From sequence record MG592456.1: a stretch of DNA of 64,000 bases. One strand, given 5' to 3'. Positions 1 through 53,456 of this stretch are shown here, piece after piece. The translations under genes and the position numbers were made by a program. Under the pieces are notes generated by a model. It was not told the DNA's origin, ran no database searches, and was given only the letters and a program-made list of their open reading frames with translations. Within the stretch, counting starts at the first letter, position 1; every line of letters starts with the position of its first letter.

Positions 1-357
1 ATCGAACATTTTACCTGTACCCTTGCGCTGAATACGCATAGACACAGCATTGGCACGAGTTTTCAACATGAAATCTTGAACAACCTTGACGATTGTTTCT
101 TGGAATTTCTGTGGGTTCTTAGTTTCGCGTATAGTAATGCCGCCTTTCTTGCCGCGCATTGCTGATACAGTACAGAACCAAGCACGTTTACCGCGATTCG
201 CTACGTCTGATTTTGTTTTATTCGTGAACGTAACGACCACATCCCTTGATTCGCCGTTCATGTCGACAACAAAGAACTTGTTTTCTTTCGTCGAGCGAGC
301 CGGATAGTAATCGTAGGTATCGCCCATGCTTTCATTTAGTTGTTGAAATCCAATCAT
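1..357 (-). CDS. Partial CDS running off the window edge; Alt-like N-terminal domain, putative internal head protein
   Basis: Not in ORF track. Open minus frame from ATG 357: MIGFQQLNESMGDTYDYY...KGGITIRETKNPQKFQETIVKVVQDFMLKTRANAVSMRIQRKGTGKMFD, resembling by eye the T4 Alt N-terminus; late-like CATAAATA upstream. Confidence 0.6.
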   Translation of the reverse strand, partial: MIGFQQLNESMGDTYDYYPARSTKENKFFVVDMNGESRDVVVTFTNKTKSDVANRGKRAWFCTVSAMRGKKGGITIRETKNPQKFQETIVKVVQDFMLKTRANAVSMRIQRKGTGKMFD

Positions 358-389
358 TTTAGACTCATCTCCAGTGTAATTTATAAGTG

Positions 390-397
390 TATTTATG
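390..397 (-). promoter_or_regulatory. T4-type late promoter (CATAAATA; second TATAAATT at 378-385)
   Basis: 1 mismatch to TATAAATA, upstream of minus-strand CDS. Confidence 0.6.
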
Positions 398-437
398 CGG
401 TTTGTATTGAGCAATTAAAAAAAAATGTAAAAAGTGG

Positions 438-467
438 TTGCGTCTTTCACCAAATGGCGATTACTAT
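438..467 (+). promoter_or_regulatory. sigma70-type early promoter
   Basis: TTGCGT-18bp-TACTAT, followed by TCGAAAC leader. Confidence 0.55.
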
Positions 468-507
468 AACTACATCGAAACGAGACATTCAACGAAGCGA
501 GAAAATT

Positions 508-1008
508 ATGACAAATCTAAAAGCAAAAGCAACAACAATGACACCTGAGCAAATCGCAGCACACTTTGACATGACTGTTATGTCAAACGGTTTTCAAGCA
601 ATCGATAAAAACAATCGTATGCACTTCTTATCAGATTTACGCTCACAGCTTCGCAAAGCATCGTCTAAGAAAGCAAACAAGAAAGCTGTATTGCCAACTG
701 CTCAAGAGAACATCATGCGCTTAAACGCTGATTTTAGCGAGTACAATTGGTTTATTCGCGACACACAGCCTGGCTTAGATATTGAAAAACTTGGTTTACG
801 TTTATACTTCATCGGTGGTGTTAACGTTCATCAGCTAAACATTCGTTCAACGTTGTTCAGCACGAAAGAATTGAACAAGATGTTTGAGAGTAATAAAGTA
901 CTGAAAAATCATACCGGCAAGGGTTCTGTGACTATTGGCTCACTTTCATACGATGAAGTTGTTCATATAACTAACAAAATCATCTTTGAGAGTAAAGAAA
1001 TGCAATAA
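508..1008 (+). CDS. Hypothetical early protein (start re-assigned to ATG 508)
   Basis: GAGAAAATTATG initiation context downstream of promoter; the track start lies upstream of the promoter. Confidence 0.75.
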   Translation: MTNLKAKATTMTPEQIAAHFDMTVMSNGFQAIDKNNRMHFLSDLRSQLRKASSKKANKKAVLPTAQENIMRLNADFSEYNWFIRDTQPGLDIEKLGLRLYFIGGVNVHQLNIRSTLFSTKELNKMFESNKVLKNHTGKGSVTIGSLSYDEVVHITNKIIFESKEMQ

Positions 1009-1033
1009 TTTTGGTTATTTAGTGAATCGGGTA

Positions 1034-1062
1034 TTGACAGTAACATCGAAATACCCGATAAT
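1034..1062 (+). promoter_or_regulatory. sigma70 promoter within a 10-bp inverted repeat
   Basis: TTGACA-17-GATAAT; ATCGGGTATT 1026-1035 / AATACCCGAT 1050-1059. Confidence 0.8.
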
Positions 1063-1112
1063 AAACACATCAAGTCGAGACAGACTTACTAATCAACTTA
1101 AAAGAGAACATT

Positions 1113-1913: not shown

Positions 1914-1929
1914 GCTAACGAATTACATT

Positions 1930-1955
1930 AAGCCACTCGATTGAGTGGCTTTTTT
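1930..1955 (+). terminator. Intrinsic terminator
   Basis: AAGCCACTC-GATT-GAGTGGCTT plus T-run. Confidence 0.85.
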
Positions 1956-2087: not shown

Positions 2088-2327
2088 ATGATAACGATAT
2101 ACACTATCCCTAACTGTGACGGGTGTCGTCACGCTATCGCATTCTGCAAGTTTAAGAAAATCCCCTATGACGTAGTCGAGTTAACTACTCAAGACGCTGT
2201 CGACAAACTTCATGTCAAGCTTGGTCAAAACATGAATGTGCGTGTTCCACTCATCATGCATGAAGATACATTAATTGGTCATCTGCCTGAGTTAAAGAAA
2301 TGGGTTAATGACAACTTGTATAAATAA
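2088..2327 (+). CDS. Glutaredoxin (NrdH/NrdC-like)
   Basis: IYTIPNCDGC (CxxC), VPLI, thioredoxin-fold size. Confidence 0.85.
   Translation: MITIYTIPNCDGCRHAIAFCKFKKIPYDVVELTTQDAVDKLHVKLGQNMNVRVPLIMHEDTLIGHLPELKKWVNDNLYK
2319..2326 (+). promoter_or_regulatory. T4 late promoter TATAAATA
   Basis: Exact consensus upstream of gp24-like gene. Confidence 0.85.
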
Positions 2328-2380: not shown

Positions 2381-3277
2381 ATGACAATTTCTATTGGTAA
2401 TGGCTTACCAGACATTGTTTCTGTTCAAAAGCGTCTATATCCATTGATTTTTACGCATATCGTATCAGAACAACCAACGTCGCAGCCAGTTGCTACTGCG
2501 TTTGGATTTAAGTCACAGACTGAAGCCGACGACGGCAGTGGTTGGAAACTATTAGGGTTCTCACTCGATCGTTGGTTTACTAATGTAAAAGCTAGTAAAT
2601 TAAAAACTGAAATCTCAATCGAAGCAATTCAAGATCTCGCTGCACTTGGTATGGGCGATGACATCATCACAACGAACCTAGCTGATTCAATCGCTGATGA
2701 CATTAACACTGATATCATTACATCGCTCAATGCAATCTCTCAGGTCGGTGCACCCCTGACTCTTTTAGGTGCGACTGATGGCGACAAGTCGTGGGACTTG
2801 TACACTAAAGTGCATGTGGCAGCGGCTGCTCTTGAGAAAGAAACAGGGTGTCATGCATCTTACGCTGTGGCAGGTGGTGACATATTTGGGATGTTAACGG
2901 GGTCGGGGTATGTCTCACAAATCGGTGACAGTAGCATATACGTTTCTGTAGCGGGATTGACCATCGTTCATGATAAGTATTCAACGACTGATTACTTCAC
3001 AGTCGGTGTTAAAAAAGATCTTGGTGAATTTGAACTTTCGAGCTTAGTATTCAGTCCATACAATTTTGATGGTGAATTTGATTCAGGTATTGCATATCAG
3101 CAATTGGCTATTGATCCATCATCATTTAATCCGACTGTGGGTGTTATTGCTCGTTATGCTCTAACTGTTGCCCCTCTAGATTCATCGCAAAAAGGCGCAG
3201 TCGAAATCGACTGGGACAATTTAGGTGCATTAGCCAACAGTTCAAAACTTTCTGTGACATACGACGTTACGGTATAA
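2381..3277 (+). CDS. 24: Capsid vertex protein gp24-like (gp23 family)
   Basis: YPLIFTHIVSEQPTSQP, KLKTEISIEAIQDL, VFSPY, PTVGVIARYAL resemble gp23/24 motifs; late promoter. Confidence 0.7.
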   Translation: MTISIGNGLPDIVSVQKRLYPLIFTHIVSEQPTSQPVATAFGFKSQTEADDGSGWKLLGFSLDRWFTNVKASKLKTEISIEAIQDLAALGMGDDIITTNLADSIADDINTDIITSLNAISQVGAPLTLLGATDGDKSWDLYTKVHVAAAALEKETGCHASYAVAGGDIFGMLTGSGYVSQIGDSSIYVSVAGLTIVHDKYSTTDYFTVGVKKDLGEFELSSLVFSPYNFDGEFDSGIAYQQLAIDPSSFNPTVGVIARYALTVAPLDSSQKGAVEIDWDNLGALANSSKLSVTYDVTV

Positions 3278-3286: not shown

Positions 3287-3802
3287 ATGAATAATCATTA
3301 TGTAGATAATAAAGCTCTGTACGCATCGCTATGCGAATGGAAAGATGAAATGAAGAAAGACTCCGACGTATCTGTGCCCGTGCCGGACCTAGTGGCAGTA
3401 AGCATCATGAAGATTAGCGAGAATTTAACTCGTCGTTACAACTTCAGCGGTTACACGCTAACGTGGAAAGAAGAAATGGTCGGGGATGCGATTGAGCACT
3501 GCTTGCGCTACATCAAAAATTTCGATACTGATAAATATAACAATCCACACGCTTATATCACCCGGATTTGTTTTAATGCGTTTGTGCAACGTATTAAGAA
3601 AGAACGTAAAGATACTGCGATTAAATATAAAGTATTCTTGTGCGATTCGTCAAATTACATCACTGAGGGCGAAGAGGAAGCGGATTTTGAGTTTCTTCAA
3701 CAAATGCTTGAGCGAGTCAACTCTTACGAATCTGGCAAAGCACCGAAGGTCTCTGCTGAAGATAAGAACGAGCCACTTAACTTACAAAAATTTTACGATT
3801 AA
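3287..3802 (+). CDS. 55: Late-transcription sigma factor gp55
   Basis: HYVDNKALY, NFSGYT..WKEEMVGDAIE, NPHAYIT..CFNAFVQRIKKE. Confidence 0.95.
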   Translation: MNNHYVDNKALYASLCEWKDEMKKDSDVSVPVPDLVAVSIMKISENLTRRYNFSGYTLTWKEEMVGDAIEHCLRYIKNFDTDKYNNPHAYITRICFNAFVQRIKKERKDTAIKYKVFLCDSSNYITEGEEEADFEFLQQMLERVNSYESGKAPKVSAEDKNEPLNLQKFYD

Positions 3803-5261: not shown

Positions 5262-5984
5262 ATGAAAACTTTTAACACTTTTTTCGAGACGCTGCATGAA
5301 GCTGCGGCTGAAGTAGAGGGGCAATACCCAGCCCCATTTGACTATAAATTTCACAAATACACAGCCGATGCTAAATTCACATCCGCTGCAACTAGTATTA
5401 ACAGCAAAGTAAACGCCGGTTTCTTATCTGCCGTTGCTTCGCACTTCAAACCCGGCTCTACGGTCATCGACTACGGTGCGGGTAAATACGGTCGTGTTGC
5501 TCAAGCATTGCGTGAGCAGGGATTCAGAGTGTTTGCGTATGATCCGTATAACGGCAAAGCAGGCGCTGATGGGTGGACTGACGTGTCGAAGACGTTACCG
5601 AATGGTATTAAATTCGATCATGGATTTAGTTCATTTGTGTTAAACGTTGTGGATTACGACGTTCAGGCTCACATTGTTAAAGAGCTTGAGAGTTACGTTA
5701 CCGGTACTAAAATTCACATCGTACGTGGTTCGGACATTGTAGACACGCTGGTCAAAGTTGTTACTGGCAAATCAAAGAACCCGTATGTTATGGGTTACGT
5801 TGAATTGCATTATCCTGACTTGTTGCAGAAAATTGTAAACGGTCACGGTACAAAAGCTGATGCGAAATGGCTTGCTCAACATGGTGTTGCGACGAAATTA
5901 GATTCGTTCCAACGCTGGCCTGACTTATCGGAGATGGGCTATAAACGCTCTGGCCCCGCTGCGTCGAGCATGTGGATCAAGTAA
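5262..5984 (+). CDS. Class I SAM-dependent methyltransferase-like protein with capsid-targeting-like N-terminus
   Basis: VIDYGAGKYG motif I, VFAYDPY, FSSFVLNVV; N-terminus MKTFNTFFETLHEA. Confidence 0.75.
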   Translation: MKTFNTFFETLHEAAAEVEGQYPAPFDYKFHKYTADAKFTSAATSINSKVNAGFLSAVASHFKPGSTVIDYGAGKYGRVAQALREQGFRVFAYDPYNGKAGADGWTDVSKTLPNGIKFDHGFSSFVLNVVDYDVQAHIVKELESYVTGTKIHIVRGSDIVDTLVKVVTGKSKNPYVMGYVELHYPDLLQKIVNGHGTKADAKWLAQHGVATKLDSFQRWPDLSEMGYKRSGPAASSMWIK

Positions 5985-5988: not shown

Positions 5989-6017
5989 AAAGGGTTGACT
6001 TCGGTCAGCCCTTTTTT
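5989..6017 (+). terminator. Intrinsic terminator (UUCG loop)
   Basis: AAAGGGTTGAC-TTCG-GTCAGCCC-T6-GTGTCTG. Confidence 0.9.
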
Positions 6018-6635: not shown

Positions 6636-6638
6636 ACT

Positions 6639-7172: not shown

Positions 7173-7495
7173 TCAAAGACGTACAAGCCGACCCAGAAGT
7201 CATGGAATACATGGATACCATGCGTGAACAGCGCGACGCGATGGTTAAAAAAGAAGCCAATCGTCGTATTAAGAAAAATCAACGTGAGATCACACGTCTA
7301 CGCAAACATGCTGAAGAATGTCTGATCTCTAATAACAAAGCGGGTTACATCTACGCAATTGGTAAACTACGTGCATTCACGGGTCAATCTGTTGCTGAAG
7401 ACGTGCTTGAAGTGCTGTGGACGACTAGTCGTGAGCAAGTCATGAGTATTGTCACTAACTTTTCGGAAGCACGCGACGCTCACTTTGAGGGCTAA
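7136..7495 (+). CDS. a-gt.4: T4 a-gt.4-like conserved protein
   Basis: KKEANRRIKKNQREITRLRKHAEE..NNKAGYIYAIGKLR. Confidence 0.7.
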   Translation: MQPTAPIENDGLIKDVQADPEVMEYMDTMREQRDAMVKKEANRRIKKNQREITRLRKHAEECLISNNKAGYIYAIGKLRAFTGQSVAEDVLEVLWTTSREQVMSIVTNFSEARDAHFEG

Positions 7496-7497
7496 TT

Positions 7498-7959
7498 ATG
7501 GATATTAAGTCAGGGAATGGCTACCCCGCTAGTGCTCTGTCAAACTTCGCACCTCATGCATTTACATTGCATGGGGTGGAATGCGCTTCAATGGAAGGCT
7601 TTTTGCAAGGTCTGAAGTTCAAAAACCCCGAAATGCAACGCGAAGTCTGTACACTAACGGGCAAAGTTGCTAAAGCTCGTGGTGCAAAGAAGAACTGGCA
7701 ACGAACACAAACCCTTTATTGGCAAGGTACGCCAATTCAACGCAACTCAGTTGGATATCAGACGTTACTTGACGATGCATTTGCGGCATTGGCTGAAAAT
7801 GTTAAGTTTCAAAAAGCTTTGCTTGCAACTGGAGATGCTAACCTTACGCATTCAATCGGGCGTAAGAAGCAATCTGAAACGGTATTGACTGTGCAAGAAT
7901 TTTGCAGTCGATTGATGACAATTCGAGATTGGGTGAAACAACTTGATGAATATAGTTAA
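7498..7959 (+). CDS. 30.3: NADAR-family ADP-ribosylhydrolase (T4 gp30.3-like)
   Basis: YPASALSNFA, MEGFLQGLKFKN, TLYWQG, KALLATG..LTHS, LTVQEF. Confidence 0.8.
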   Translation: MDIKSGNGYPASALSNFAPHAFTLHGVECASMEGFLQGLKFKNPEMQREVCTLTGKVAKARGAKKNWQRTQTLYWQGTPIQRNSVGYQTLLDDAFAALAENVKFQKALLATGDANLTHSIGRKKQSETVLTVQEFCSRLMTIRDWVKQLDEYS

Positions 7960-13193: not shown

Positions 13194-14150
13194 ATGGCAA
13201 TCGCATCAGTAGCAAATGAACTTCTTTGGGAACAAAAATATCGTCCTGTCTCAATCAAAGACTGCGTTTTACCCGAACGAGTTCGTAAAATATTCACTAA
13301 GATGGTAGACGACGAGCAAATTCCGAACATGCTTTTGACTAGTTCATCACCTGGAACAGGTAAAACTACGGTTGCACGTGCCGTACTTGCCGACATGGGT
13401 TATGATGTGTTATTCGTCAATGCATCAGCCGACAACGGGATTGGGTTCATCAGAGATCGACTACCGGCATTCTGTTCAACTGTATCATTCTCGGGTAAGC
13501 CGAAAGCGGTCATTCTAGATGAAGCAGATAACATGTCTGTTGACGCACAAAAAGCACTGCGCGGCATGATTGAGCAATACAGTAAAAACGTTCGTTTCAT
13601 TTTAACGTGCAACTACGCACAAAAAATCTTAGGTCCGATTCGTTCACGTCTGCAAGAATTTGAGTTTGTATACAGCAAAGAAGAGCAATTATCTTGCATC
13701 AAGCAAATGATTGTGCGTTCTATGCATATCTGCAAGCAGGAAGGCATTCCGGTTCAAAACGCGATGGTTCTAAAAGAGCTAGTGAAACGCAATTATCCTG
13801 ATAACCGCAAATGCATCGTTTCACTGCAAAATTATTCACGCAATGGTGTCATTGATGAAGGTATTTTGTCAGAAATCACGGCAAACGATGATATCTCGAA
13901 AATGATTTCAGCGCTGAAAACGAATGATTTTAAAGCGGTTAGAGCACTGATTCCGAACTACACTGGCGACCTTGCAGCATTTTTACACAATCTATACAAA
14001 GCTGCATACACGGATTTAGATCCAAATAGCATTCCCGTTTTCATTCAGATTGTAGGTGAAGCGAACAACAACGCAACATCGTGCATCGATACTGAAATCT
14101 TACTGGCGTACACGCTTGTGCAAATCATGCTTGAGTGTAAGTTCGTATAG
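13194..14150 (+). CDS. 44: Clamp loader large subunit gp44
   Basis: LWEQKYRP, PGTGKTT, ILDEAD, IRSRL. Confidence 0.95.
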   Translation: MAIASVANELLWEQKYRPVSIKDCVLPERVRKIFTKMVDDEQIPNMLLTSSSPGTGKTTVARAVLADMGYDVLFVNASADNGIGFIRDRLPAFCSTVSFSGKPKAVILDEADNMSVDAQKALRGMIEQYSKNVRFILTCNYAQKILGPIRSRLQEFEFVYSKEEQLSCIKQMIVRSMHICKQEGIPVQNAMVLKELVKRNYPDNRKCIVSLQNYSRNGVIDEGILSEITANDDISKMISALKTNDFKAVRALIPNYTGDLAAFLHNLYKAAYTDLDPNSIPVFIQIVGEANNNATSCIDTEILLAYTLVQIMLECKFV

Positions 14151-14158
14151 GGGTGATT

Positions 14159-14656
14159 ATGGATATTTTTGAAATGTTGGCAAAAGGTGAGGCGGCACAA
14201 GTCGCTCACGATGCCGAAGTGGCTGAAGATGAGTTGCTGGTCAAAAGTGCGAAGCGTAAGAAAATGTCTCCGTTCGATGCACTAACTGGCATTACCATGA
14301 AGAAATATGGGTTGAACTTACCGGAAGATGTTCGTGATTACGAAGGTGTGAAGTTCATGGTCAATCGTGGTCTGTCGCAAGAAGTTGATACACTCGTTCA
14401 TGCTTATATCATGTCGACTAGTGGCGCGAATCTACCACCCGAAATGCATTATGATTACTATTATCATGCGGTTCGAAAGGGTAAGCGATACACGAAGTGG
14501 GCTAAGGCAGACAAGTATGAGAATGTCGACTTAATCATTGAGATTTATCAAGTTAGTAAGCCAAAGGCAATTGCCATCCTTGATCGTCTTACTGACGAAG
14601 ACTTGACCCGTCTTGTGACTTGGTATGAGTCAAGATCGGGGGGCTTAACACGATAA
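14159..14656 (+). CDS. 62: Clamp loader small subunit gp62
   Basis: FMVNRGLS, HYDYYYHAVRKGKRYTKWAK; synteny. Confidence 0.85.
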   Translation: MDIFEMLAKGEAAQVAHDAEVAEDELLVKSAKRKKMSPFDALTGITMKKYGLNLPEDVRDYEGVKFMVNRGLSQEVDTLVHAYIMSTSGANLPPEMHYDYYYHAVRKGKRYTKWAKADKYENVDLIIEIYQVSKPKAIAILDRLTDEDLTRLVTWYESRSGGLTR

Positions 14657-14689
14657 TAAATACTGTTTTATTGCTGTTGAGATTTAATC

Positions 14690-15070
14690 ATGGATATTAT
14701 AAACAAACTAAAGGTTCAGCTTGTCGATGACGAGTCGTTTCTGAAAATTAGAGAAACGCTGACGCGAATCGGCATTGCGAACAACAAGACCAGTACTTTG
14801 TATCAGTCTTGTCATATACTCCAGAAGCGTGGTGTTTACTACCTCGTCCATTTTAAGGAGCTGCTAGCCCTTGATGGTCGTTGTGTCGAGATCACATCCG
14901 AAGACATTGAACGTCGAAACAACATAGCGAAGCTGCTCGAAGACTGGGGATTGTGTGTTATTGCACATCCGGAATCTCACGATTTTTCGGGTGATAATAA
15001 ATTTCGCATTATCTCTTTCCGTGAGTCGAAGGACTGGACACTCAGATATAAGTACAAAATAGGCGGGTAA
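14690..15070 (+). CDS. regA: Translational repressor RegA
   Basis: FLKIRETLTRIGIAN, LYQSCHILQKRG.YYLVHFKEL. Confidence 0.97.
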   Translation: MDIINKLKVQLVDDESFLKIRETLTRIGIANNKTSTLYQSCHILQKRGVYYLVHFKELLALDGRCVEITSEDIERRNNIAKLLEDWGLCVIAHPESHDFSGDNKFRIISFRESKDWTLRYKYKIGG

Positions 15071-15195
15071 CTATGATCACAAACGAAGAACTATGGGATT
15101 AATTAATATGATTATTAGACCAGTTCACATTGATGAGCACGACCGTGGTGGATTTTGCGGTGATGACCAAGGTTTAGACTACTTGAGTTGATATT

Positions 15196-15217
15196 AGGGG
15201 CTTTCGGGCCCTTTTTT
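15196..15217 (+). terminator. Intrinsic terminator (UUCG loop)
   Basis: AGGGGCT-TTCG-GGCCC-T6 with G-U pairs. Confidence 0.75.
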
Positions 15218-15231
15218 GAGGGAAATATATT

Positions 15232-15753
15232 ATGAATGACCAACAATTTAAAGAACAATTAGAAAAGGGTGGTAAGTTCGAAGATGCCGCTGAGCCGTTA
15301 ATTGCTAGACTGTTCACTCGTCAAGATGAACACGCAATGATCATCAACACTGCCACTTCCAAAACAGATCAAAAACATAAACGCGGTCAGCGTCTTATGT
15401 ACTGCCAAGACACATCCGCTAGTTACATGCTCCCTGACGTATTCATTTTCTCTAACGGGAAACAGCTCTGCATCGAAATCAAATACAAAAACAAATTTTA
15501 CCGACACACCGATGGTGAACTGTATGGGTACATCGACACGTACAAAGTCGAAGAGTACGAAGAAGCCGTCAAGAAGATGGGTTTTGATGGGATTTACTAC
15601 GTGTTTGGTGAGAAAACGGACCGTAATGTGTATTTCGGTAGTCCAGTTCAGGCAGTCGACATGGTAATTCCTCAATTTGCTGAATATAAGAACCCAAAGG
15701 GATTGTTTAATTGCTGGAAAATTTCTGAATTGCATACAATCGGGAAATGGTAG
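15232..15753 (+). CDS. PD-(D/E)XK-type nuclease-like protein
   Basis: GGKFED, LPDVFIF, CIEIKYK. Confidence 0.65.
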   Translation: MNDQQFKEQLEKGGKFEDAAEPLIARLFTRQDEHAMIINTATSKTDQKHKRGQRLMYCQDTSASYMLPDVFIFSNGKQLCIEIKYKNKFYRHTDGELYGYIDTYKVEEYEEAVKKMGFDGIYYVFGEKTDRNVYFGSPVQAVDMVIPQFAEYKNPKGLFNCWKISELHTIGKW

Positions 15754-15782
15754 TTTAATCATAAGCATATCTTTGTTATCAT
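15754..15782 (+). promoter_or_regulatory. GTTTA-class promoter for gp43
   Basis: (G)TTTAAT-17-TATCAT. Confidence 0.6.
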
Positions 15783-15822
15783 TCATATCGAAGCATATTT
15801 AAAATACAGCGAAAGGAATATC

Positions 15823-23104: not shown

Positions 23105-23242
23105 ATGTTACTTGTTTTATTAATTCTGTTTTTTGCAATAGCGGGGGGTGTGCTCGTATACTATTTCCATATGCACAACTTAAAACAATTCCATCGGAGA
23201 CATAAATATTTGCAAGCGAGGGCAAAAAAGAGACTACCGTAA
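23105..23242 (+). CDS. 45-aa single-TM microprotein (not in ORF track)
   Basis: MLLVLLILFFAIAGGVLVYYFHMHNLKQFHRRHKYLQARAKKRLP; TAATG-coupled to next gene. Confidence 0.55.
   Translation: MLLVLLILFFAIAGGVLVYYFHMHNLKQFHRRHKYLQARAKKRLP
23201..23208 (+). promoter_or_regulatory. Late promoter-like CATAAATA
   Basis: 1 mismatch to consensus. Confidence 0.55.
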
Positions 23243-23472
23243 TGGGATTCAGATTTAATAAAAAGCTAGCAGATGCTGTGGATGAGTGGCGAATCGTTCC
23301 ACGTATCTTAGTTGGCATGTATTGCTATTTGCTTTACTATACCGCGATGTGGTTTATGGCTTTGCCAGACCCATCCGGAACTCAGGCGGCTTTTGTGTCT
23401 ACTATTGTAGGTGCAGCAGCCGCTATTTTCGGTTTATATACAAACGCAGGCAAAAACAAGTCTGGCGAATAG
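23242..23472 (+). CDS. Two-TM membrane protein, holin-like
   Basis: WRIVPRIL..two hydrophobic helices..FGLY, basic tail; late promoter upstream. Confidence 0.5.
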   Translation: MGFRFNKKLADAVDEWRIVPRILVGMYCYLLYYTAMWFMALPDPSGTQAAFVSTIVGAAAAIFGLYTNAGKNKSGE

Positions 23473-23480: not shown

Positions 23481-24953
23481 ATGAAAAAAAGATTTTCAGA
23501 ATTTTACGCTGAAGTTGAAGAAACTCAGATATTCGAAGTGTCAGATCGGTCAAACGTCCCCATCACATGGCACGATCCTTTGAATGCTACATTTAGTGCA
23601 GGTGGCGAGAAAGTCGCCGTTTCATTGGATGACGATCAAGATGGTGAGTTTACCATTATGTTCTCCAACAATGGGTCATATTCCCAATCCGGTCAAAGCA
23701 AAGGCGCCGCCGCGATATTCTCGGGGGTTTTGACTACTCTGCGTGAATTCACCGAAACATATGAAGAAGAAGTGGGTCTGAAGCCATATCAATACACGTT
23801 TTCAGCCGCATATGAGTTGCCGATGGGACATCCACACAAAAGGGACATCATTTCCCTGTCAGTTGGAAATTCAACGCTCAGTCTCGATGAAAAGAAAGCA
23901 GTATTCAAAGATTTGATATCCAGACCGATGTTGTATTACGCACTGTCATTGACGTTTGGTGCTTCGTATGGTTACAAGACTGACATGAACGACATCTATT
24001 TACTGAAACTAGCGGGTGGTGCTAATGATTTTCGTTCAGTTCGTCGCAATGTAAACAAATCGATTGCTGACCTGTCTGAAGACCAAATGGACCGCCTGTT
24101 TGTTAGTATGAAGGGTTCAGTTCATTTCAAATTGACGAATGCAAGTACAAGCAGTAGCGACTACGACGGTGCTTATATGGATAGTGAACTCAGCCTTGAA
24201 GACAATATCGACGATGCGAGTGATGAACAGCTAGAAGATTGGATCAACGCTGGACGCGAAGCCGATATCATTGAATATGCTGGCTGGCAAACACTTGTTA
24301 GGATTGCTGGCATGGAATATATGCATAGTAATTTAATAACCCATTCTGACAAAGACGTCCGTGACGCAGTAATCCAATCAGATCCCGACATGGTAGATGA
24401 ACTGATTGATTCAGAACACCCAGAAATGCGTGCTCATGCTGCTGAGTACGGTGCGGGTATTGAGAAACTAATCACTGATGACGAAGAAGAAGTTCGTGAC
24501 GCTGCGTGGGACTACGCAACTGAGAACTATGACTTCGATCAACGCATACCGCTGATGAAGTACGTAATTCGTAACGGCGATGAAGAACAAATCGACGCGA
24601 TGGCTGAGTGGGTGATCGACTACGGTCATTGGCAAGAGCGTTTATTCCTTGCAGAAGAAGGTCGAAACATAGAGAAATTGATGATTGACGCATCGGAAGA
24701 AGTTCGTCAAGGTGCTATCAACTCGGTGTTTAGTCAAATGGGGTTTGAGGGCGAAGAAGCCGCTAGCTATATTTCTGATGTGTCGGCTAATACCGACTAC
24801 AGTCAGGAAAACTTTGAATACGCGATGGAAGGCAACTTCGGGTCGGACTTCGAAGATAAGCTGCTTGAACTTGCACGAGACGAAATGCTTGACGTTAGCA
24901 AGTACTCACCCGACGAAGATGAAGACGAAGATGAAGACGACATATATTCGTAA
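23481..24953 (+). CDS. Acidic protein: CTS-like N-terminus, paralogous domain, HEAT-like C-terminal repeats (start re-assigned)
   Basis: MKKRFSEFYAE; repeats such as LIDSEHPEMRAHA, LITDDEEEVRDAA, LMIDASEEVRQGA; AGGA RBS. Confidence 0.75.
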   Translation: MKKRFSEFYAEVEETQIFEVSDRSNVPITWHDPLNATFSAGGEKVAVSLDDDQDGEFTIMFSNNGSYSQSGQSKGAAAIFSGVLTTLREFTETYEEEVGLKPYQYTFSAAYELPMGHPHKRDIISLSVGNSTLSLDEKKAVFKDLISRPMLYYALSLTFGASYGYKTDMNDIYLLKLAGGANDFRSVRRNVNKSIADLSEDQMDRLFVSMKGSVHFKLTNASTSSSDYDGAYMDSELSLEDNIDDASDEQLEDWINAGREADIIEYAGWQTLVRIAGMEYMHSNLITHSDKDVRDAVIQSDPDMVDELIDSEHPEMRAHAAEYGAGIEKLITDDEEEVRDAAWDYATENYDFDQRIPLMKYVIRNGDEEQIDAMAEWVIDYGHWQERLFLAEEGRNIEKLMIDASEEVRQGAINSVFSQMGFEGEEAASYISDVSANTDYSQENFEYAMEGNFGSDFEDKLLELARDEMLDVSKYSPDEDEDEDEDDIYS

Positions 24954-27303: not shown

Positions 27304-27332
27304 TTGACTGGATGATGTATTTAGATTAAGAT
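27304..27332 (+). promoter_or_regulatory. sigma70 promoter overlapping a divergent late-like TCTAAATA (27318-27325, minus)
   Basis: TTGACT-17-TAAGAT. Confidence 0.7.
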
Positions 27333-30355: not shown

Positions 30356-30378
30356 TGAATAGTAAAAGAGACTAAATA

Positions 30379-31613: not shown

Positions 31614-31909
31614 GACAAGTCATCGAATTGCTCAACAAGACAAAACTATCCTACACTGACATCAGCGCATTTGGTCAGCCTTGCATATACGTACACGCAG
31701 GGGTGGAGACTATTCTGCGTGTAACATACAACGAGGACTGTTTTTCATTTTATGATTATCGAAGTCAGTATCTATACGAAGAACAGTCGGTTGACGATCT
31801 TGAACTACACTTAAAATCAATTGACGTAGGTCTACCGAACGATATCGTTCTAAACCTGAACGGAAATATTGACAGAGACACCATTCCTCATGGGGCATTT
31901 TTAAAATGA
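31610..31909 (+). CDS. Hypothetical protein
   Basis: ATGA overlaps on both sides. Confidence 0.65.
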   Translation: MRQVIELLNKTKLSYTDISAFGQPCIYVHAGVETILRVTYNEDCFSFYDYRSQYLYEEQSVDDLELHLKSIDVGLPNDIVLNLNGNIDRDTIPHGAFLK

Positions 31910-32745
31910 AATTTTCAGAATATCAAGAACTCAATGAAGCATTTGATCGAGCAGCACCTGACTTGGTGATTAAACGCAATAGAAGCAAATTCAGTGTTGA
32001 TGGTCAAGAATACGTGGTTAGTACTTCTATTGGGTTGTCACGTACGGCCATGTCGGTTGCATTTTCGGCTATTGACGAAGACGGAACTCCCAGCTATGAG
32101 CTAGTTAAAGGTGATGCCCGCACAGCCATGACTGTGTTCGCCACCGTGATTAAAGTCGTACAGCATCACATTGAGAAATACGACTTAATTCGCGTACATT
32201 TTTCGGCATATGCTGACGACATTACATCCGACGCGAAGAAACGAAAGCGACTGTACACGTCATTGACCAAACGTTATGCCGAACAAATGGGATGGGAATG
32301 GGAAGAAGTCGGCGGGGATTTCAGCATCAAAGCTCCAGTGGTCAAAGAAGAGCCAGCGGGATATTCTACAAGTTGGGGTACTGAGTCTCTAGATTTGTTC
32401 GAAGTGAATGCAGCAGCGGTGATTAAAGCAGCGAATGATATTAACATGCGATGGGATTTGTATGATGGCGCGGTTTTGGAAATTATCACTGCAAGTGGCA
32501 GAGCCAGATTGTCTACTGGCTCGATTAATAGCGTAGACTCATGGGCAGACGCATTTGCGCCCCTTATATGGGGCCCGGGGGAGTTTGAGGGAGTGGACGA
32601 CATGCAGAGAATTGCAAGAATTGCAGGTAAGATCTGGGTCCAAGGTGATATGGAAGTGACAATCTATAAAAATATCGAGCACTTCGAGCGTGACGCTGAA
32701 AATCCGGTGTCATCTGAGACAAAATTGATATTAGACCTGATGTAA
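31906..32745 (+). CDS. CTS-bearing paralogous protein
   Basis: MKFSEYQELNEA; LVKGDARTAMTVFATV...KKRKRLY. Confidence 0.75.
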   Translation: MKFSEYQELNEAFDRAAPDLVIKRNRSKFSVDGQEYVVSTSIGLSRTAMSVAFSAIDEDGTPSYELVKGDARTAMTVFATVIKVVQHHIEKYDLIRVHFSAYADDITSDAKKRKRLYTSLTKRYAEQMGWEWEEVGGDFSIKAPVVKEEPAGYSTSWGTESLDLFEVNAAAVIKAANDINMRWDLYDGAVLEIITASGRARLSTGSINSVDSWADAFAPLIWGPGEFEGVDDMQRIARIAGKIWVQGDMEVTIYKNIEHFERDAENPVSSETKLILDLM

Positions 32746-32749: not shown

Positions 32750-32777
32750 AAAAGGTTAGCTTCGGCTAACCTTTTTT
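32750..32777 (+). terminator. Intrinsic terminator (UUCG loop)
   Basis: AAAAGGTTAGC-TTCG-GCTAACCTTTT. Confidence 0.9.
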
Positions 32778-35951: not shown

Positions 35952-36118
35952 TGAAGAACGAGCAATGTTGCAGCAGAAATTGTGACAACACGGTAGACGT
36001 CCCTGATGATTTTGAATTTCAGGGATGTTGCTCTGGGTTTGAATGTGGGTGTATGGGAATGATGATCAATCCCGTATTCTGTGATGAATGTATTAAACAA
36101 TACGAAGGAACCGCATGA
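35951..36118 (+). CDS. 55-aa Cys-rich microprotein (9 Cys; not in ORF track)
   Basis: MKNEQCCSRNCDNTVDVPDDFEFQGCCSGFECGCMGMMINPVFCDECIKQYEGTA; TAATG and ATGA overlaps. Confidence 0.75.
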   Translation: MKNEQCCSRNCDNTVDVPDDFEFQGCCSGFECGCMGMMINPVFCDECIKQYEGTA

Positions 36119-37671: not shown

Positions 37672-37673
37672 GT

Positions 37674-38585
37674 ATGAGCGAAAATTATGATAAAGTCTCT
37701 GCCATTGCGGCAGAGCATTTGGGCAAGAAAGCAGGCGATTATAGTGATTTCGTCGATATTAAAGACGTAAAGTCTGATTTACTCGTGGCAATCCCGCGTG
37801 AATTAAATCGCGTGGACTATAACATTGATAACGACACATTCGTCGGGATTGATGCATGGCATGGCTTTGAAGTATCTGCACTGACTAAAAACGGGTTGCC
37901 TGTATCAGGTATGGTTAAAGTTGTATACCCAAGCAACTCACCCAACATCGTTGAAAGTAAATCAATGAAGTTGTACTGGAATAGCTTCAACATGGCTAAG
38001 ATTGCAGACAACAGCCGCGATATACGCGCTGAAATCGAGCGAATCGCTACTGCTGATCTATCAGAATGTATGCAAGCGCCTGTACAAGTGACGTTCTTCA
38101 CTGAGCGCGTGGGTCAGCCACACGGTATGAACGGATTTGCTGAAATGAGTAAGTACCTTAGCCCTGATCTTGTATTTGATGCAGACGGTGCAGACACGGG
38201 CTTGCTTGTGAGCGCAGGTCGTGGTGGACAGCTTAAAGTGATGACCAACAACTTGCGTTCTAATTGTCGCGTGACACATCAGCCAGATTTTGGTGATTTG
38301 TACATCGATATGATTGGCACTGACGTGCCGACGATTGATAGCTTGATGCAATACATCGTGTCATTCCGCAAAGAGAATCATTTCCACGAAGAATGTGTTG
38401 AAATGATTTACAAGGCATTACAAGATACGTTTGAGCCATCCGGATTGATGGTCACTGCACTGTACACACGTCGTGGTGGTTGGAACATCTGTCCAAGCCG
38501 CGCATCACATGAAAGTTTGTTACCTGATACACTCAAAAGTGCATCAGTCTCGCACACTAACGGAAGTTGTTTATTCCGTCAGTAA
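37674..38585 (+). CDS. queF: PreQ0 reductase QueF (two-domain type)
   Basis: IVESKSMKLY, SNCRVTHQPDFG (catalytic Cys), FHEECVE, LYTRRGG. Confidence 0.93.
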   Translation: MSENYDKVSAIAAEHLGKKAGDYSDFVDIKDVKSDLLVAIPRELNRVDYNIDNDTFVGIDAWHGFEVSALTKNGLPVSGMVKVVYPSNSPNIVESKSMKLYWNSFNMAKIADNSRDIRAEIERIATADLSECMQAPVQVTFFTERVGQPHGMNGFAEMSKYLSPDLVFDADGADTGLLVSAGRGGQLKVMTNNLRSNCRVTHQPDFGDLYIDMIGTDVPTIDSLMQYIVSFRKENHFHEECVEMIYKALQDTFEPSGLMVTALYTRRGGWNICPSRASHESLLPDTLKSASVSHTNGSCLFRQ

Positions 38586-38620
38586 TAAGCGTATAATGAG
38601 TGCTTGTCGTGAGCACTCAT
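38569..38620 (+). promoter_or_regulatory. GTTTA-class promoter with downstream 9-bp inverted repeat
   Basis: GTTTAT-17-TATAAT; ATGAGTGCT/AGCACTCAT. Confidence 0.6.
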
Positions 38621-38638
38621 ATATTGAGAGGAATTAAA

Positions 38639-39355
38639 ATGAAAGTAGTATCAGTACTAAGCGGTGGCTTGGACAGCACCATATTGACGTACAAACTAGT
38701 AGAATCATTCGGAGCTGAAAACGTCTTCGCGTTGTCATTCTACTACGGTCAAAAGCAATCAATTGAGCTTGAAAAGGCTAAATTGACTTGTTCCAAGCTC
38801 GGTATCGAGCATCGTCTTATCGACATTTCATTTCTTGGTGAAGTAGTTGCACCTGTGTGTGCAAATATCGCTGGATCAGACGTTGCAATGCCAACCATCC
38901 AAGATGTTCTCGGAGATCCTCAGCCACCGACTGAAGTCCCATATCGCAATATGCTATTGAATACAATTGCATTTTCATTTGCTCAAGCGAATGGCTGTGA
39001 GCAAGTATTCACCGGTATTCAAGTGCATGACGCTTACGGCTATTGGGATTGCACTCAAGATTTTCTTGACAATATGAATGCTATATCAGCATTGAATCGC
39101 CAACATGAAATCAAACTTCGAGCGCCATTCGCTCATATGTCAAAGGCAGATGAAATTGCAATTGGTGTCGAGTTAGGTGTTCCATTTGAAGATAGCTTAA
39201 CATGTTACGATCCGAATGCAGCAGGCGAAAGTTGTGGTGTCTGTCCGTCATGTGCTGAACGTATCATGAATTTCGGTAAAGCAGGGATAATCGATCCTGC
39301 ACCATACTCTAAGCACATCCCATGGGATGTTGTCATGAAAAGGAATGGTCACTAA
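38639..39355 (+). CDS. queC: 7-cyano-7-deazaguanine synthase QueC (start re-assigned)
   Basis: LSGGLDS, YGQK, VPYRN, TCY..CGVCPSC. Confidence 0.96.
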   Translation: MKVVSVLSGGLDSTILTYKLVESFGAENVFALSFYYGQKQSIELEKAKLTCSKLGIEHRLIDISFLGEVVAPVCANIAGSDVAMPTIQDVLGDPQPPTEVPYRNMLLNTIAFSFAQANGCEQVFTGIQVHDAYGYWDCTQDFLDNMNAISALNRQHEIKLRAPFAHMSKADEIAIGVELGVPFEDSLTCYDPNAAGESCGVCPSCAERIMNFGKAGIIDPAPYSKHIPWDVVMKRNGH

Positions 39356-39954
39356 TGTGCGGATTATTTGCAGCTAAATCGAAAGAAGATCTGCTTGAAC
39401 TCGCGAAACTGAACATTCACCGCGGCTCGCGTACTCATTCAGTGAGTACGTTCGTCGGCGGCGAACTCACCATTGCAAAGTTCGATGGTGAGTTTAATGC
39501 AGAGAATGTGCCTGATAAAGCAGATTACTATATTTGTCACATTCAAGCACCGACTAGTCAGAGCGCGAAAGCGCATCCTGCAATAGTGGGGCCGATAAAT
39601 GGCAAATGTTCACACGTTTGGCACAACGGCATTCTAAAATCAGACTACATGAATGATTGTTCATTCAAGTGGGACACTGCTCATATTGCAGAAATGATGT
39701 ATCATGATCGTGATATCGGCACACTCGATGGGTCATTTGCTTGCTTTCACTATCAGGACGGCAAATTAAATGTGTTTCGCAATGAGATCAGCCCGTTATT
39801 CGTGGGCACGGACGGTCAATTCAGTAGCACGAAGACTAAACTCACTCCTGTTGCATTAGATGCAAATAAAGTGTTTAACATCGAGCTTTTCCCGTTTACA
39901 CTCACAGTCGTTAAAGAGTTCAAAACTTTGAATAATCCATATTTTTTCATGTGA
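39355..39954 (+). CDS. Stand-alone class II (Ntn) glutamine amidotransferase-like protein
   Basis: Start re-assigned by TAATG coupling: MCGLF, HRG, HPA, WHNG, WDT, DGSFA. Confidence 0.8.
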   Translation: MCGLFAAKSKEDLLELAKLNIHRGSRTHSVSTFVGGELTIAKFDGEFNAENVPDKADYYICHIQAPTSQSAKAHPAIVGPINGKCSHVWHNGILKSDYMNDCSFKWDTAHIAEMMYHDRDIGTLDGSFACFHYQDGKLNVFRNEISPLFVGTDGQFSSTKTKLTPVALDANKVFNIELFPFTLTVVKEFKTLNNPYFFM

Positions 39955-51445: not shown

Positions 51446-51450
51446 CAAAT

Positions 51451-51484
51451 CGCAGACAGTAAAAAGGAGTCCGAAGACTCCTTT
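51451..51484 (-). terminator. Minus-strand intrinsic terminator
   Basis: Minus strand: AAAGGAGTC-TTCG-GACTCC-TTTTT-ACTGTCTG. Confidence 0.8.
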
Positions 51485-51554
51485 AGTGAAAGCGCGACGA
51501 TGTTTAACCAATCGCAGTGACCGACTACTGCTTTCGCATAGTCGAACTCTCACT
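51461..51554 (-). ncRNA. Candidate structured small RNA (three-way junction plus terminator)
   Basis: P1 AGUGAGAG/CUUUCACU; P2 CGACUAUGC-GAAA-GCAGUAGUCG; P3 GCGAU..AUCGU; no ORF. Confidence 0.5.
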
Positions 51555-51663
51555 TATATTTAGAACTATTGTACGCCCTATTACTCATAAAGAAGTACAA
51601 TAATGAGACGTTCGCACTGAAAATTAACTGAAGTGCTTGAAAAACAACTAAAGGAAAAAAATC

Positions 51664-52089
51664 ATGACACCGAAATCAATCTTACGCGCCGCTAACACCG
51701 TAGTGAAAGAGATCAAAGTCTTTCAAGGCGAGCGCACCACTACAGTAGTGGGTCGTGCGGGATGTGGTAAGAACGCAATGCTAATGGGAATGCTGTGTCA
51801 ACGCGGTGCTAAAGATTCAGTGTGGATTTCAACTGAACAAACACCCCTGCAAGTAGCACCAAAGCTGCCGAAGGACAACATCGTGGTCGGCGCTAATGAC
51901 CCATCATTAGAAAGTATAATCAAGGCTGTCATGATCGCATTGTCGACGGGTCGTAAGTATATCTTCATCGAGCACATGGTCTCTTACCGTGAACTGAATG
52001 TATTAGAAGTATTAGAAGCAATCGTGCCTAACGATGTACAATTGTTCATCGGCATGGCAGCAAACAGAGACGGGAGCGTCAAATTATGA
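51664..52089 (+). CDS. P-loop-like protein (possible NrdC.10-like)
   Basis: VVGRAGCGKN; adjacent to nrdC.11-like gene. Confidence 0.55.
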   Translation: MTPKSILRAANTVVKEIKVFQGERTTTVVGRAGCGKNAMLMGMLCQRGAKDSVWISTEQTPLQVAPKLPKDNIVVGANDPSLESIIKAVMIALSTGRKYIFIEHMVSYRELNVLEVLEAIVPNDVQLFIGMAANRDGSVKL

Positions 52090-53135
52090 AAGTACTATTC
52101 CAGAGCCTATTTGGTTCTAAATTATATGGCTGCGACACGCCAGAGTCCGATACTGATTACAAAACCATCTATCAGCCTGAACTATGTCTGCTATTGCGCG
52201 GACGTGACATCAAAAACAGTGTTGTGAGTACGGGCAACTCGAAAGGCAAGAACACTGTCGATGACGAAGACCAAGAGTTTATTCCGGTTCAGGTGTTCAT
52301 GCGTGATTTCCTTGGTGGTCAATCGTATGCTATTGAGCTTGCGTTCAATGCATTGTCAAACCCTAATGATTGTAATGATACGTTCCTACAGTTATGTCAA
52401 GAACTTACAAGCAATTACCTGACGTCGAATGTGAAATCCATGGTTGGATATGCGATCAATCAGGCTCAGAAGTATGGTATCAAAGGCACTCGACTTAATA
52501 GTCTGATTGAATTCAAGACACTAGTCGATGAACATGCAGGTGATATGAACCAAAAGCTTAAAGATAACACAGCTCTGTGTCAGAAGTTGCATGAGTTAGT
52601 CGAGACTGACCAACATGTTGAGTTTCTTCACTATCATGGGCCACTAACGACGGATCCTGCACACCTGTTAGACCCTGCTTTCTCTGTGCTTGGGAAAGTA
52701 TTCGGACTTGAAATTGACTTTACTGAAGCGACCAAACGTCTTGACAATATGGTAGGTAAGTATGGTAGTCGTGCGAAGCAAGCTCGTGTATCATCTGGCA
52801 ATGACTGGAAAGCGATCTCACATGCGGTTCGTGTCATCGATCAGGCGATTGATATCTTAGATCGCCAAGAACTTGTGTTCCCGTTGCGCAACGCTGAGTT
52901 TTATCGAGACATTAAGCTTGGTAAGTATGAGTGGGAATACATTTCAGAGGTGTTATCCGCGCGTATGCGTGTACTCGAAGCAAGCCAGCTCACAAGCACA
53001 TTGCCTGTTCATTCGCCAGAACTCGTTGCTGATTTCTATGAGTGGCATGACAGAAAACTTGCCATAATGTACGCTCCCGTTGACACGTTGCAGGAATACT
53101 TCGACGCGAAAGAAGAAGACGAGTTTAACTATTAG
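52086..53135 (+). CDS. nrdC.11: Pol-beta-superfamily nucleotidyltransferase, T4 NrdC.11-like
   Basis: FGSKLYGCDTPESDTDYK, KYGIKGTRL, YGSRA, DWKAISHAVR. Confidence 0.85.
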   Translation: MKVLFQSLFGSKLYGCDTPESDTDYKTIYQPELCLLLRGRDIKNSVVSTGNSKGKNTVDDEDQEFIPVQVFMRDFLGGQSYAIELAFNALSNPNDCNDTFLQLCQELTSNYLTSNVKSMVGYAINQAQKYGIKGTRLNSLIEFKTLVDEHAGDMNQKLKDNTALCQKLHELVETDQHVEFLHYHGPLTTDPAHLLDPAFSVLGKVFGLEIDFTEATKRLDNMVGKYGSRAKQARVSSGNDWKAISHAVRVIDQAIDILDRQELVFPLRNAEFYRDIKLGKYEWEYISEVLSARMRVLEASQLTSTLPVHSPELVADFYEWHDRKLAIMYAPVDTLQEYFDAKEEDEFNY

Positions 53136-53177
53136 TGTATTCGAATTTGAATACACTATTATCGAAGTGTATTCAAA

Positions 53178-53185
53178 TATAAATA
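53178..53185 (+). promoter_or_regulatory. T4 late promoter TATAAATA
   Basis: Exact consensus. Confidence 0.85.
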
Positions 53186-53210
53186 CGTTAAACTAACAAT
53201 GGAGTTTAGG

Positions 53211-53456
53211 ATGAAAGGTTTTAACGATTATCACAAGAAAGGCGAAGTCAAGCTTCAAGAAACTGAACAAGAGTTTCATGAACGTGTAGTCAAGCATCGT
53301 CAAGTGGACAGCAAACGCTATCCAAAAGTACAAGGTCTTGAGGGCCCGTACACTGACTTGAATGGCAAAGTGTACTACTATGATCCACGCGAGGGGCTTT
53401 ATTATGACCCAGACACGGACATTTACTTGAAAGCTAAAGACTTGCGCTTACCATAA
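53211..53456 (+). CDS. Small late protein with OCRE-like aromatic repeat (start re-assigned)
   Basis: MKGFNDY; YYYDPREGLYYDPDTDIY; GGAG RBS. Confidence 0.75.
   Translation: MKGFNDYHKKGEVKLQETEQEFHERVVKHRQVDSKRYPKVQGLEGPYTDLNGKVYYYDPREGLYYDPDTDIYLKAKDLRLP

Follow-up and report, generated by a model that had tools for sequence, protein, structure and literature searches.

The idea that a short N-terminal leader allows T4-like phages to load varied cargo into their heads is still mainly inference, and to our knowledge only four such non-structural injected proteins are known from T4. T4 Alt is a head-packaged, injected ADP-ribosyltransferase of the Alt/VIP2 R-S-E clade. For the T4 internal protein (IP) IPIII the first 10 residues of its leader, the capsid targeting sequence (CTS), were reported to suffice for packaging, whereby residues 4 and 7 govern targeting and residues 8 and 10 processing, and an Asp at position 10 stops cleavage and leaves targeting (PMC9026906). 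A review of this work proposed that T4-like phages may use the CTS to package a variety of proteins (PMC9026906), and packaged effectors are likewise an established concept (PMC9026906, PMC5512222, PMC9503650). Polyvalent proteins, MuF-fused effectors and Dar of phage P1 are virion-packaged anti-defence enzymes which are thought to be active at entry (PMC5512222, PMC9503650). Here, eight scattered genes with CTS-like N-termini are considered that lie in a stretch of 64,000 nucleotides (nt; hereafter the window), identical in sequence to bases 62001-126000 of MG592456.1, the 239,318 bp genome of Vibrio phage 1.081.O._10N.286.52.C2 (genus Schizotequatrovirus), a KVP40-like relative of T4.

The best explanation, regarded as likely though well short of certain, is that most of the eight genes and at least six others encode proteins led by a T4-type CTS or propeptide, and that this set enters the prohead, is trimmed there and is partly ejected. 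As judged from sequence, at least a dozen unrelated proteins seem to be tagged with a T4-type head-loading signal; this set of head-targeted proteins, expanded beyond that of T4, is probably real, and its packaging is inferred. The leader (aromatic at about position 4, hydrophobic or aromatic three on, then hydrophobic-x-Glu) would direct its protein to the scaffolding core while the prohead grows, where the gp21-type prohead protease of this phage would cleave after the leader Glu; once mature, the protein would remain in the head along with the packaged DNA, and some copies at least would be ejected with that DNA on infection, as happens with T4 Alt and IPI. In four or five members, the fifth being a weak case (the Alt-like gene), a second module, the DUF6934 domain of about 120 residues, stands directly behind the leader, and the C-terminal parts placed on it vary (ADP-ribosyltransferase, acidic HEAT/ARM solenoid, beta-rich domains). 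Head-packaged injected proteins act ahead of all phage gene expression and are therefore a first line against host defences as well as a protein-delivery route for engineered phages. If true, the proposal would provide, for a group of marine Vibrio phages, a list of about a dozen cargo proteins with predicted cleavage sites; it would also place DUF6934, a phage domain family with hundreds of members, in a functional context for the first time, and supply a sequence rule to spot packaged proteins in other T4-related genomes.

Leaders and late promoters

Genes were called anew on the full record (349 genes), in agreement with the annotation inside the window, and are named here by the window position of their start, with (-) for the reverse strand (Table 1). 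An earlier note, made from the letters of the window, had listed the eight N-termini, and each of them coincides with an annotated coding-sequence start and with the new calls. The phage encodes both a prohead protease of the gp21 type (record 7178-7708; PF03420, E-value 7e-95) and a scaffolding core, with gp22, gp67-like, gp68 and gp23 annotated beside the protease gene, and the core proteins gp22, gp67 and gp68 carry the leader motif at their own N-termini. The T4 record gives as reference MKTYQEFIAE/A for IPII and IPIII, MKTFKEF...ITE/A for IPI, MAKINELLRE/S for gp24 and MELITE/L for Alt (a slash marks the cut, here and below). The aromatic or hydrophobic residues of T4 positions 4 and 7 are found at 4/7 in 357(-), 5262 and 53211, at 5/8 in 23481 and 3812, and at 3/6 in 30666 and 31906, with F4 and V7 in 27286(-), and they are conserved in the orthologues. 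A hydrophobic-x-Glu motif of the gp21 cleavage type, which taken alone is non-specific, closes the leader in seven of the eight, the exception being 3812.

KVP40 orthologues were found for all eight genes, whereby 357(-), 5262, 23481, 27286(-), 30666 and 31906 share 33-50% identity with theirs, 3812 shares 70% and 53211 shares 84%. Related-locus searches with single window proteins gave at most two close relatives and sometimes none. The orthologous leaders read MIGFQQLTE/N (KVP40.0059, for the Alt-like 357(-)), MKQFCNFLAE/V (KVP40.0066, for 5262; 10 residues), MKLFTEFYQE/V (KVP40.0097, for 23481), MIIFENVQSQRALE (KVP40.0103, for 27286(-)), MKFSEYQRINE/SLDRPA (KVP40.0115, for 30666), MKFSEYQNELTE/A (KVP40.0116, for 31906) and MQGFKDYFKKGEVKLQE/T (KVP40.0154, for 53211). 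In the six full-length homologue clusters of 23481 (MK[LK]F-x-x-FY-x-E/V) F4, F7, Y8 and E10 are invariant and positions 3, 5, 6 and 9 vary, so that the invariant positions are exactly the determinant positions of the T4 CTS. For 5262, 65 mostly metagenomic homologue clusters were collected, most of which open with M[KR]-hydrophobic-x-[ED]-hydrophobic-hydrophobic-x-E, behind which come a linker that varies and then a mature start that is conserved; in homologue forms of 385-391 residues the leader sits on an added front domain, which is homologous to the product of record gene 15283-15795(-), itself starting MIIFE. As the leader moves to the added domain, it goes with the terminus rather than with the methyltransferase fold, and the fusion suggests that the two separate genes work together in the phage considered here.

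The bare motif is of no use: [LI]xE occurs inside the first 24 residues of 81 of 348 proteins (23%) and hence is worthless as evidence. A rule derived from T4 (aromatic near residue 4, hydrophobic three later, then hydrophobic-x-E by residue 18) takes 24 proteins, as compared to 9.8±3.1 when residues 2-25 are shuffled (maximum of 1000 shuffles, 21), and about 10 matches are expected from internal Met windows. Starts of the form MIxF occur in 12 proteins versus 1.4±1.2 in shuffles. A stricter motif, [LI]xE[AS] with the E at 5-18, is present in 14 proteins, among them gp22 and gp23 as positive controls; eight of the 14 have a late promoter directly upstream, compared with 30 of the 335 others (Fisher test, odds ratio 13.6, p=1.8e-5). 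The genome scan for CTS-type leaders, which the earlier note had called for, thus bears out an excess, and it carries the set past the window to at least six further genes.

As to other genes with such starts, a minus-strand cluster between gp23 and uvsW (record 14002-17990) holds several starts of the types MIIFE, MIEF and MIQF and some TCTAAATA promoters. In T4, hoc and inh occupy this interval. From its sequence, the cluster resembles another locus for head proteins with leaders. A second ADP-ribosyltransferase-type protein (record 177475-178602), with a weak match to the PARP catalytic domain, has the leader-like start MKNLNQFMEELQLNE and no late promoter directly upstream.

The exact octamer TATAAATA occurs 21 times in the genome, which is about the number expected by base composition; 18 of the 21 copies are followed within 120 nt by a start on the same strand, intergenic DNA being only 10% of the genome, and copies precede the genes for sheath, gp22, gp23, gp24, gp25 and wac. 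Because of this placement and the structural genes served, they are taken as real late promoters, and the variant TCTAAATA is used likewise upstream of tail tube, fibre and other structural genes. Strand was rejected as a marker of late genes, as structural and replication genes both lie on the plus strand here. The window holds the exact octamer at 2319(+), 53178(+) and 30355(-). The latter serves none of the eight candidates; it stands ahead of a gene for a 490-residue protein with an SGNH-hydrolase domain (28833-30305(-)), which runs opposite to its neighbours and lacks the leader motif. Its product is, by sequence, a putative late esterase, its role unassigned.

Late promoters of 357(-), 27286(-) and 53211 are direct. 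The CATAAATA octamer is kept upstream of KVP40.0059 and exact TATAAATA upstream of KVP40.0154, and 53211 forms a monocistronic late unit with a terminator at about 53470-53497. For three further genes the late-type octamer is indirect. The membrane-protein gene behind the 23201 octamer stops 9 nt before 23481, whose KVP40 orthologue has its own TCTAAATA, placed after a terminator hairpin. Genes 3812 and 5262 sit 1.5-2.9 kb 3' of the 2319 octamer, behind gp24 and gp55 in a single operon, a layout which phage D479 keeps, together with an equivalent hairpin after its 5262 orthologue. The octamer proposed for 30666 (at 30371) was rejected, as it reads ACTAAATA, a sequence with two mismatches that lies directly against the start codon (ATG) of gene 30379; the hairpin past 31906 likely ends a unit of 30379, 30666, 31610 and 31906. 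Hence, of the octamers cited in the earlier note, two are exact (2319, 53178), three carry one mismatch (390(-), 23201, 27318(-)) and that at 30371 is not credible, and its statement that each gene lies downstream of one goes too far: such an octamer is missing for 30666 and 31906, and 3812 and 5262 belong to the gp55 operon.

Within that operon, the gene annotated 'major capsid protein' (2381-3277) was found to be the gp24 vertex protein (orthologue KVP40.0063), by which its reading as a second major capsid gene is rejected; this gp24 has 298 residues, without the 10-residue propeptide of T4 gp24 and without about 130 internal residues.

Table 1. Candidate genes, promoter-like octamers and hairpins of the window, and leader-bearing scan matches elsewhere in MG592456.1 (window positions unless marked as record; aa, amino acids; pI, isoelectric point)
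Feature	Position	Strand	Details
Alt-like ADP-ribosyltransferase NVP1081O_084, first 119 codons	1..357	-	whole gene record 60642-62357, 571 aa; N-terminus MIGFQQLNE/S
late-promoter-like octamers	378..397	-	CATAAATA at 397..390, TATAAATT at 385..378; 40 and 28 nt upstream of Alt-like start
exact late promoter TATAAATA	2319..2326	+	heads gp24 (2381-3277), gp55 (3287-3802), gene 3812, gene 5262
NVP1081O_090, 480 aa	3812..5254	+	N-terminus MIGNFDSFLSAN
NVP1081O_091, methyltransferase-like	5262..5984	+	N-terminus MKTFNTFFETLHE/A; motif DYGAGKYG
intrinsic terminator	5989..6014	+	11-bp stem, T run; closes gp24-gp55-3812-5262 unit
late-promoter-like CATAAATA	23201..23208	+	41 nt upstream of small membrane-protein gene 23242-23472
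NVP1081O_117, 490 aa, pI 4.18	23481..24953	+	leader MKKRFSEFYAE/V; DUF6934 residues 3-111; HEAT/ARM-like alpha-solenoid ~240-470
NVP1081O_121, 347 aa	26243..27286	-	N-terminus MIIFENVQSQAAIE; HELQH at residues 131-135
late-promoter variant TCTAAATA	27318..27325	-	octamer 27325..27318; 39 nt upstream of gene 27286(-)
NVP1081O_128, 315 aa	30666..31613	+	N-terminus MKFSTYTNETQSLDE/AMDRAA; DUF6934 residues 1-138
NVP1081O_130, 279 aa, paralogue of 30666	31906..32745	+	MKFSEYQELNE/AFDRAA; DUF6934 residues 1-123; beta-rich C-terminal domain
palindromic 11-bp hairpin	32750..32775	.	just past stop of gene 31906
exact late promoter TATAAATA	53178..53185	+	33 nt upstream of gene 53211
NVP1081O_161, 81 aa	53211..53456	+	N-terminus MKGFNDYHKKGEVKLQE/T; Tyr-rich OCRE-like motif residues 55-74
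scan match outside window	record 15792-16388	-	MIEFLTE/A
scan match outside window	record 36873-37526		MYSFSEFINLAE/S
scan match outside window	record 59714-60601		MIVFEPFQLDE/S
scan match outside window	record 195303-195572	-	MSEKTFEEFMGQLQE/A; 89 aa, pI 10.1, KPQSKD repeats, beside tRNA cluster
scan match outside window	record 202408-202737	-	MIEFNNVALHE/S

Proposed cargo domains and the head core

Apart from the assignment of 357(-) to the ADP-ribosyltransferase family, the functions of the cargoes are proposed from motifs and folds. The Alt-like product matches phrog_802 and PF03496 (29.5 bits versus a cut-off of 23.4), its LYRG, SAS and ECE align with LYRS, STS and EME of T4 Alt (the R, SxS and ExE of the family), and its gene adjoins that of DNA ligase, as in T4; the Alt-like cargo read in the earlier note is hence confirmed. 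KVP40.0059 has D-C-D at the catalytic ExE site, where this phage has E-C-E and T4 has E-M-E, and as D-C-D replaces ExE its activity may differ. MG592456.1 is rich in genes that handle ADP-ribose (macro, Sir2, PARP-like, Alt-like), and a macro-domain protein is encoded at 22585-23100 of the window, just upstream of the 23201 promoter region.

The acidic HEAT-like cargo read for 23481 is supported by its pI and by an AlphaFold2 (AF2) model (mean predicted local distance difference test, pLDDT, 78), in which the C-terminal alpha-solenoid is modelled confidently and matches HEAT/ARM proteins of the PDB, and an extra first helix (residues 5-12) corresponds to the CTS-like part. The remaining cargo assignments of the earlier note stand less firmly. 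The methyltransferase reading of 5262 comes from a Methyltransf_23 match of 22.8 bits, below the 27-bit cut-off; some homologues carry PF13489, and a PDB sequence search gave no solved relative. For 27286(-) no match was found in Pfam or by PDB sequence search, and its structure neighbours in the ESM Atlas (SprT, M78, M8, PipA; an LPD23 lead) are weak, with template modelling (TM) scores of only 0.23-0.33; together with HELQH they make a zincin possible. The OCRE match of 53211 covers 20 Tyr-rich residues and is just at cut-off, and 3812 gave no fold or family lead in Pfam, NCBIfam, PDB sequence and ESM Atlas searches.

Leaders of this kind are also borne by proteins that build the head. The set may instead enter the prohead as core or scaffold and serve to build or size the long KVP40-type head, whereafter the proteins would share the fate of T4 gp22, gp67 and gp68, degradation or expulsion, or else persist as inert internal proteins. 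This is the alternative that survives best and is nevertheless considered rather unlikely. The same leaders on gp22, gp68 and gp23 of this phage and on T4 core proteins speak for it, as do the influence of T4 IPIII on head assembly (PMC9026906), the strong acidity of the 23481 product, which resembles the gp67/gp68 peptides, and the migration of related proteins as small fragments in another phage (Atu_ph07, below). It does not account well for enzyme-type domains, namely the ADP-ribosyltransferase, whose R-S-ExE is intact, the methyltransferase-like fold and the HExxH motif, nor for other phages in which the DUF6934 fold is fused to domains of the Zeta-toxin, deaminase and ParB types, and most members are confined to KVP40-like phages and diverge fast (33-50% identity), unlike core structural proteins.

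DUF6934 behind the leader

Genes 30666 and 31906 are paralogues of each other and of record gene 59714-60601, just upstream of the window, and the first ~120 residues of this family are homologous to the first ~110 of 23481 (hhalign probability 84%, E-value 7.6e-6). Searching with a profile built on these N-domains gave 505 representatives, in which the DUF6934-type domain occurs alone (140-160 residues), in tandem (2-5 copies) or within proteins of up to 1951 residues; seven large matches were scanned and all seven match PF22028, six of them well above cut-off and up to 162 bits. The window proteins themselves score below the 27-bit gathering cut-off (31906, 20.6; 30666, 17), and their membership is drawn from profile homology and shared fold. 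A hidden Markov model built from 269 domain copies gave E-values of 1.3e-29 (31906), 2.8e-28 (30666), 5e-24 (59714), 8e-15 (23481) and 1.6e-3 (Alt-like protein, in which a weak domain would span residues 2-127). Pfam PF22028 itself aligns to the Alt-like N-terminus with 15.9 bits (E-value 1.6e-3, profile positions 2-144).

The AF2 models of 31906 (pLDDT 72) and 23481 agree in the alpha/beta topology of the N-domain. In the BFVD database the 31906 model finds stand-alone DUF6934 members (TM up to 0.82), the Alt ADP-ribosyltransferases of phiAS5, SP18, HY03, Henu6, CF1 and Melville, and phage proteins carrying Zeta-toxin, deaminase or ParB domains; an ESM Atlas search gave the same Alt lead (an Alt cluster), and matches to PDB structures are weak and GNAT-like. 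Going by these models, Alt proteins of T4-like phages are predicted to have DUF6934 at their front, too. A further copy lies in KVP40.0371 (320 residues; domain at 157-296, E-value 4e-16), in a head-proximal minus-strand cluster, and no counterpart scored in this phage. In the literature searched, a link of DUF6934 to Alt or the virion, and the size of the leader set, were not described, and the term was met in an unrelated context only.

Virion data come from Agrobacterium phage Atu_ph07, which has the T4 core head genes and two adjacent DUF6934-like genes, whose products, with computed masses of 31.68 and 33.72 kDa, correspond exactly to gp482 and gp483 of the published virion table. Electrospray ionisation tandem mass spectrometry of virions identified these with 9 and 16 unique peptides (37% and 56% coverage), and both peak in gel band 12, where proteins of 13-16 kDa run (PMC6102473). 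Such a result agrees with proteins that are associated with the virion and have been cut to roughly the size of one domain, and is supportive. Phage CBA120 has no PF22028 match, and its virion proteome is therefore unusable for the question.

From these data a wider proposal may be formed, which as a whole is doubtful: among myoviruses whose heads assemble as in T4, DUF6934 would be a common adaptor for delivery through the head, forming the Alt front domain and standing beside or fused to many effectors; the motif hydrophobic-x-E/[AL]FD would be the protease site, tandem proteins would be polyproteins cut in the head, the 10-residue T4 CTS would be the surviving leader, and KVP40-like phages would inject at least a dozen such proteins.

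Several observations count against packaging of the set as proposed. Neither 30666 nor 31906 has a credible late promoter, and a sigma-70-like TTGAAT-16-TATAAT (30206-30233) lies ahead of both; 3812 and 5262 are co-transcribed with gp55, the late sigma factor. This factor must be produced ahead of late transcription. In 3812 the orthologues (KVP40, nt-1, D481, D479) read F5..F8-L9-S-E11/N, and in this phage the leader Glu is replaced by Ala11, because of which the product, if packaged, may stay uncut, and its listing as a cleavable substrate does not hold here. The DUF6934 match of the Alt-like gene is weak (E-value about 1e-3), T4 loci including T4 Alt gave no significant DUF6934 sequence match, and no relation emerged when the DUF6934 families were compared by hhalign with an alignment of three Alt sequences. 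As to the virion, no proteome, N-terminal sequencing, transcriptome or expression time course of any KVP40-like phage was found in the literature searched, a look for sequencing runs of the window listed none, and the Atu_ph07 virions were purified with polyethylene glycol only, with 131 proteins listed (PMC6102473), for which reason that evidence is not conclusive.

The most specific objection concerns the leader itself. Every DUF6934 copy, internal ones included, opens with [LIV]-[TND]-E-[AL]-F-D-[KR]-P, which therefore marks the domain boundary; E11, D14 and R15 are invariant within the family, and AF2, which leaves residues 1-7 of 31906 disordered, places residues 6-13 in a domain helix. 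The hydrophobic-x-E-[AL]-F-D-x-P motif could accordingly be part of the fold and no cleavage site. An explanation on these lines, by which the N-terminal segment is the first helix or boundary motif of DUF6934 and other folds and the proteins are ordinary cytoplasmic early or middle ones, would suit the promoters of 30666 and 31906 and the non-structural, if not decisive, genome contexts of two distant methyltransferase homologues, and yet is held to be improbable. In N-terminal copies with a longer leader, as compared to internal copies, an aromatic residue stands six positions before the Glu (E-6) in 47% vs 5% and three before it (E-3) in 29% vs 2%, and these positions, which correspond to Y4 and F7 of T4, are thus a pattern confined to N-terminal copies. 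Folds without relation to one another carry the same leader (the methyltransferase-like family, record 36873 and 195303, gene 53211), the strict motif is associated with late promoters, and the DUF6934 proteins of Atu_ph07 are found in virions at about half the precursor size; as for the promoters, T4 ipI, ipII and ipIII have no TATAAATA within 70 nt either. A resemblance by chance, picked by eye among common MK- starts and LxE motifs, is very improbable, since against the 23% of N-termini with [LI]xE and a loose rule that also takes DNA polymerase, RNA ligase 2 and a membrane protein of the window (about 10 of its 24 matches being expected) stand the excess over shuffles, the Fisher test, the determinant positions kept in otherwise 33-50% identical orthologues and the shared domain homology.

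The modular capsid-delivered kit, larger than T4 IPI-III/Alt, that the earlier note had proposed hence gains support, as to a set of head-targeted proteins, from enrichment, late-promoter association, conserved CTS positions, a shared Alt-type domain, the Atu_ph07 relatives and at least six extra genes; as to the word payload, a structural role in the head core is a serious competitor.

Elsewhere in the window a 7-deazaguanine/queuosine cluster (35277-39954) holds genes for GTP cyclohydrolase I, a DpdA-like transglycosylase (36115-37671) and QueF-like and QueC-like proteins. Clusters of this kind are linked to phage DNA base modification.

Comparison with described systems

With respect to Pfam, the N-domains of 23481, 30666 and 31906 retrieve strong DUF6934 (PF22028) members, yet score 17-21 bits versus 27; the family record has the function unassigned and no virion link, and the links to Alt and the virion are drawn in this analysis.

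With polyvalent proteins, MuF-fused effectors and Dar the candidates share a conserved delivery part combined with varied enzymes (ADP-ribosyltransferase, methyltransferase and zincin-like peptidase, and ParB, deaminase and Zeta-toxin in relatives). In contrast to polyvalent and MuF proteins, the parts are spread over many small genes and not joined in one giant protein: the window proteins have 81-571 residues and at most one effector-type domain each and are no polyvalent proteins, giant multi-domain forms being seen only among distant DUF6934 relatives. The delivery part, unlike that of MuF proteins, is a CTS-like leader with or without DUF6934, and cutting would fall to the prohead serine protease rather than to a built-in zincin.

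Closer is T4 Alt, with which 357(-) shares PF03496, the R/SxS/ExE residues, a propeptide-like start with hydrophobic-x-E, a late-type promoter and the ligase neighbour; the DUF6934-like fold of 31906 in turn matches the front part of Alt from T4-like phages. The two enzymes differ in that they are 23% identical over the catalytic region and have 571 versus 682 residues, and in that T4 Alt is without a DUF6934 match at sequence level.

Closest is the IP/CTS system of T4. Differences to it are that most cargoes here have 240-570 residues and are acidic or enzyme-like, whereas T4 IPs are small and basic, that the leader, known here from sequence alone, varies in length (E at 5 to 17), that several cargoes share a folded domain of 120 residues behind the leader, and that there is no sequence homology to the mature regions of T4 IPs. 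Common to both are a short leader with aromatics at 4 and 7 and hydrophobic-x-Glu at 8-10, to the extent that MKQFCNFLAE and MKLFTEFYQE of KVP40 resemble MKTYQEFIAE of T4, diverse and fast-evolving cargo behind this conserved leader, a gp21-type protease and a gp22/67/68 core, and even a small basic repeat protein with a leader (record 195303-195572), which lies beside a tRNA cluster, as does T4 ipI.

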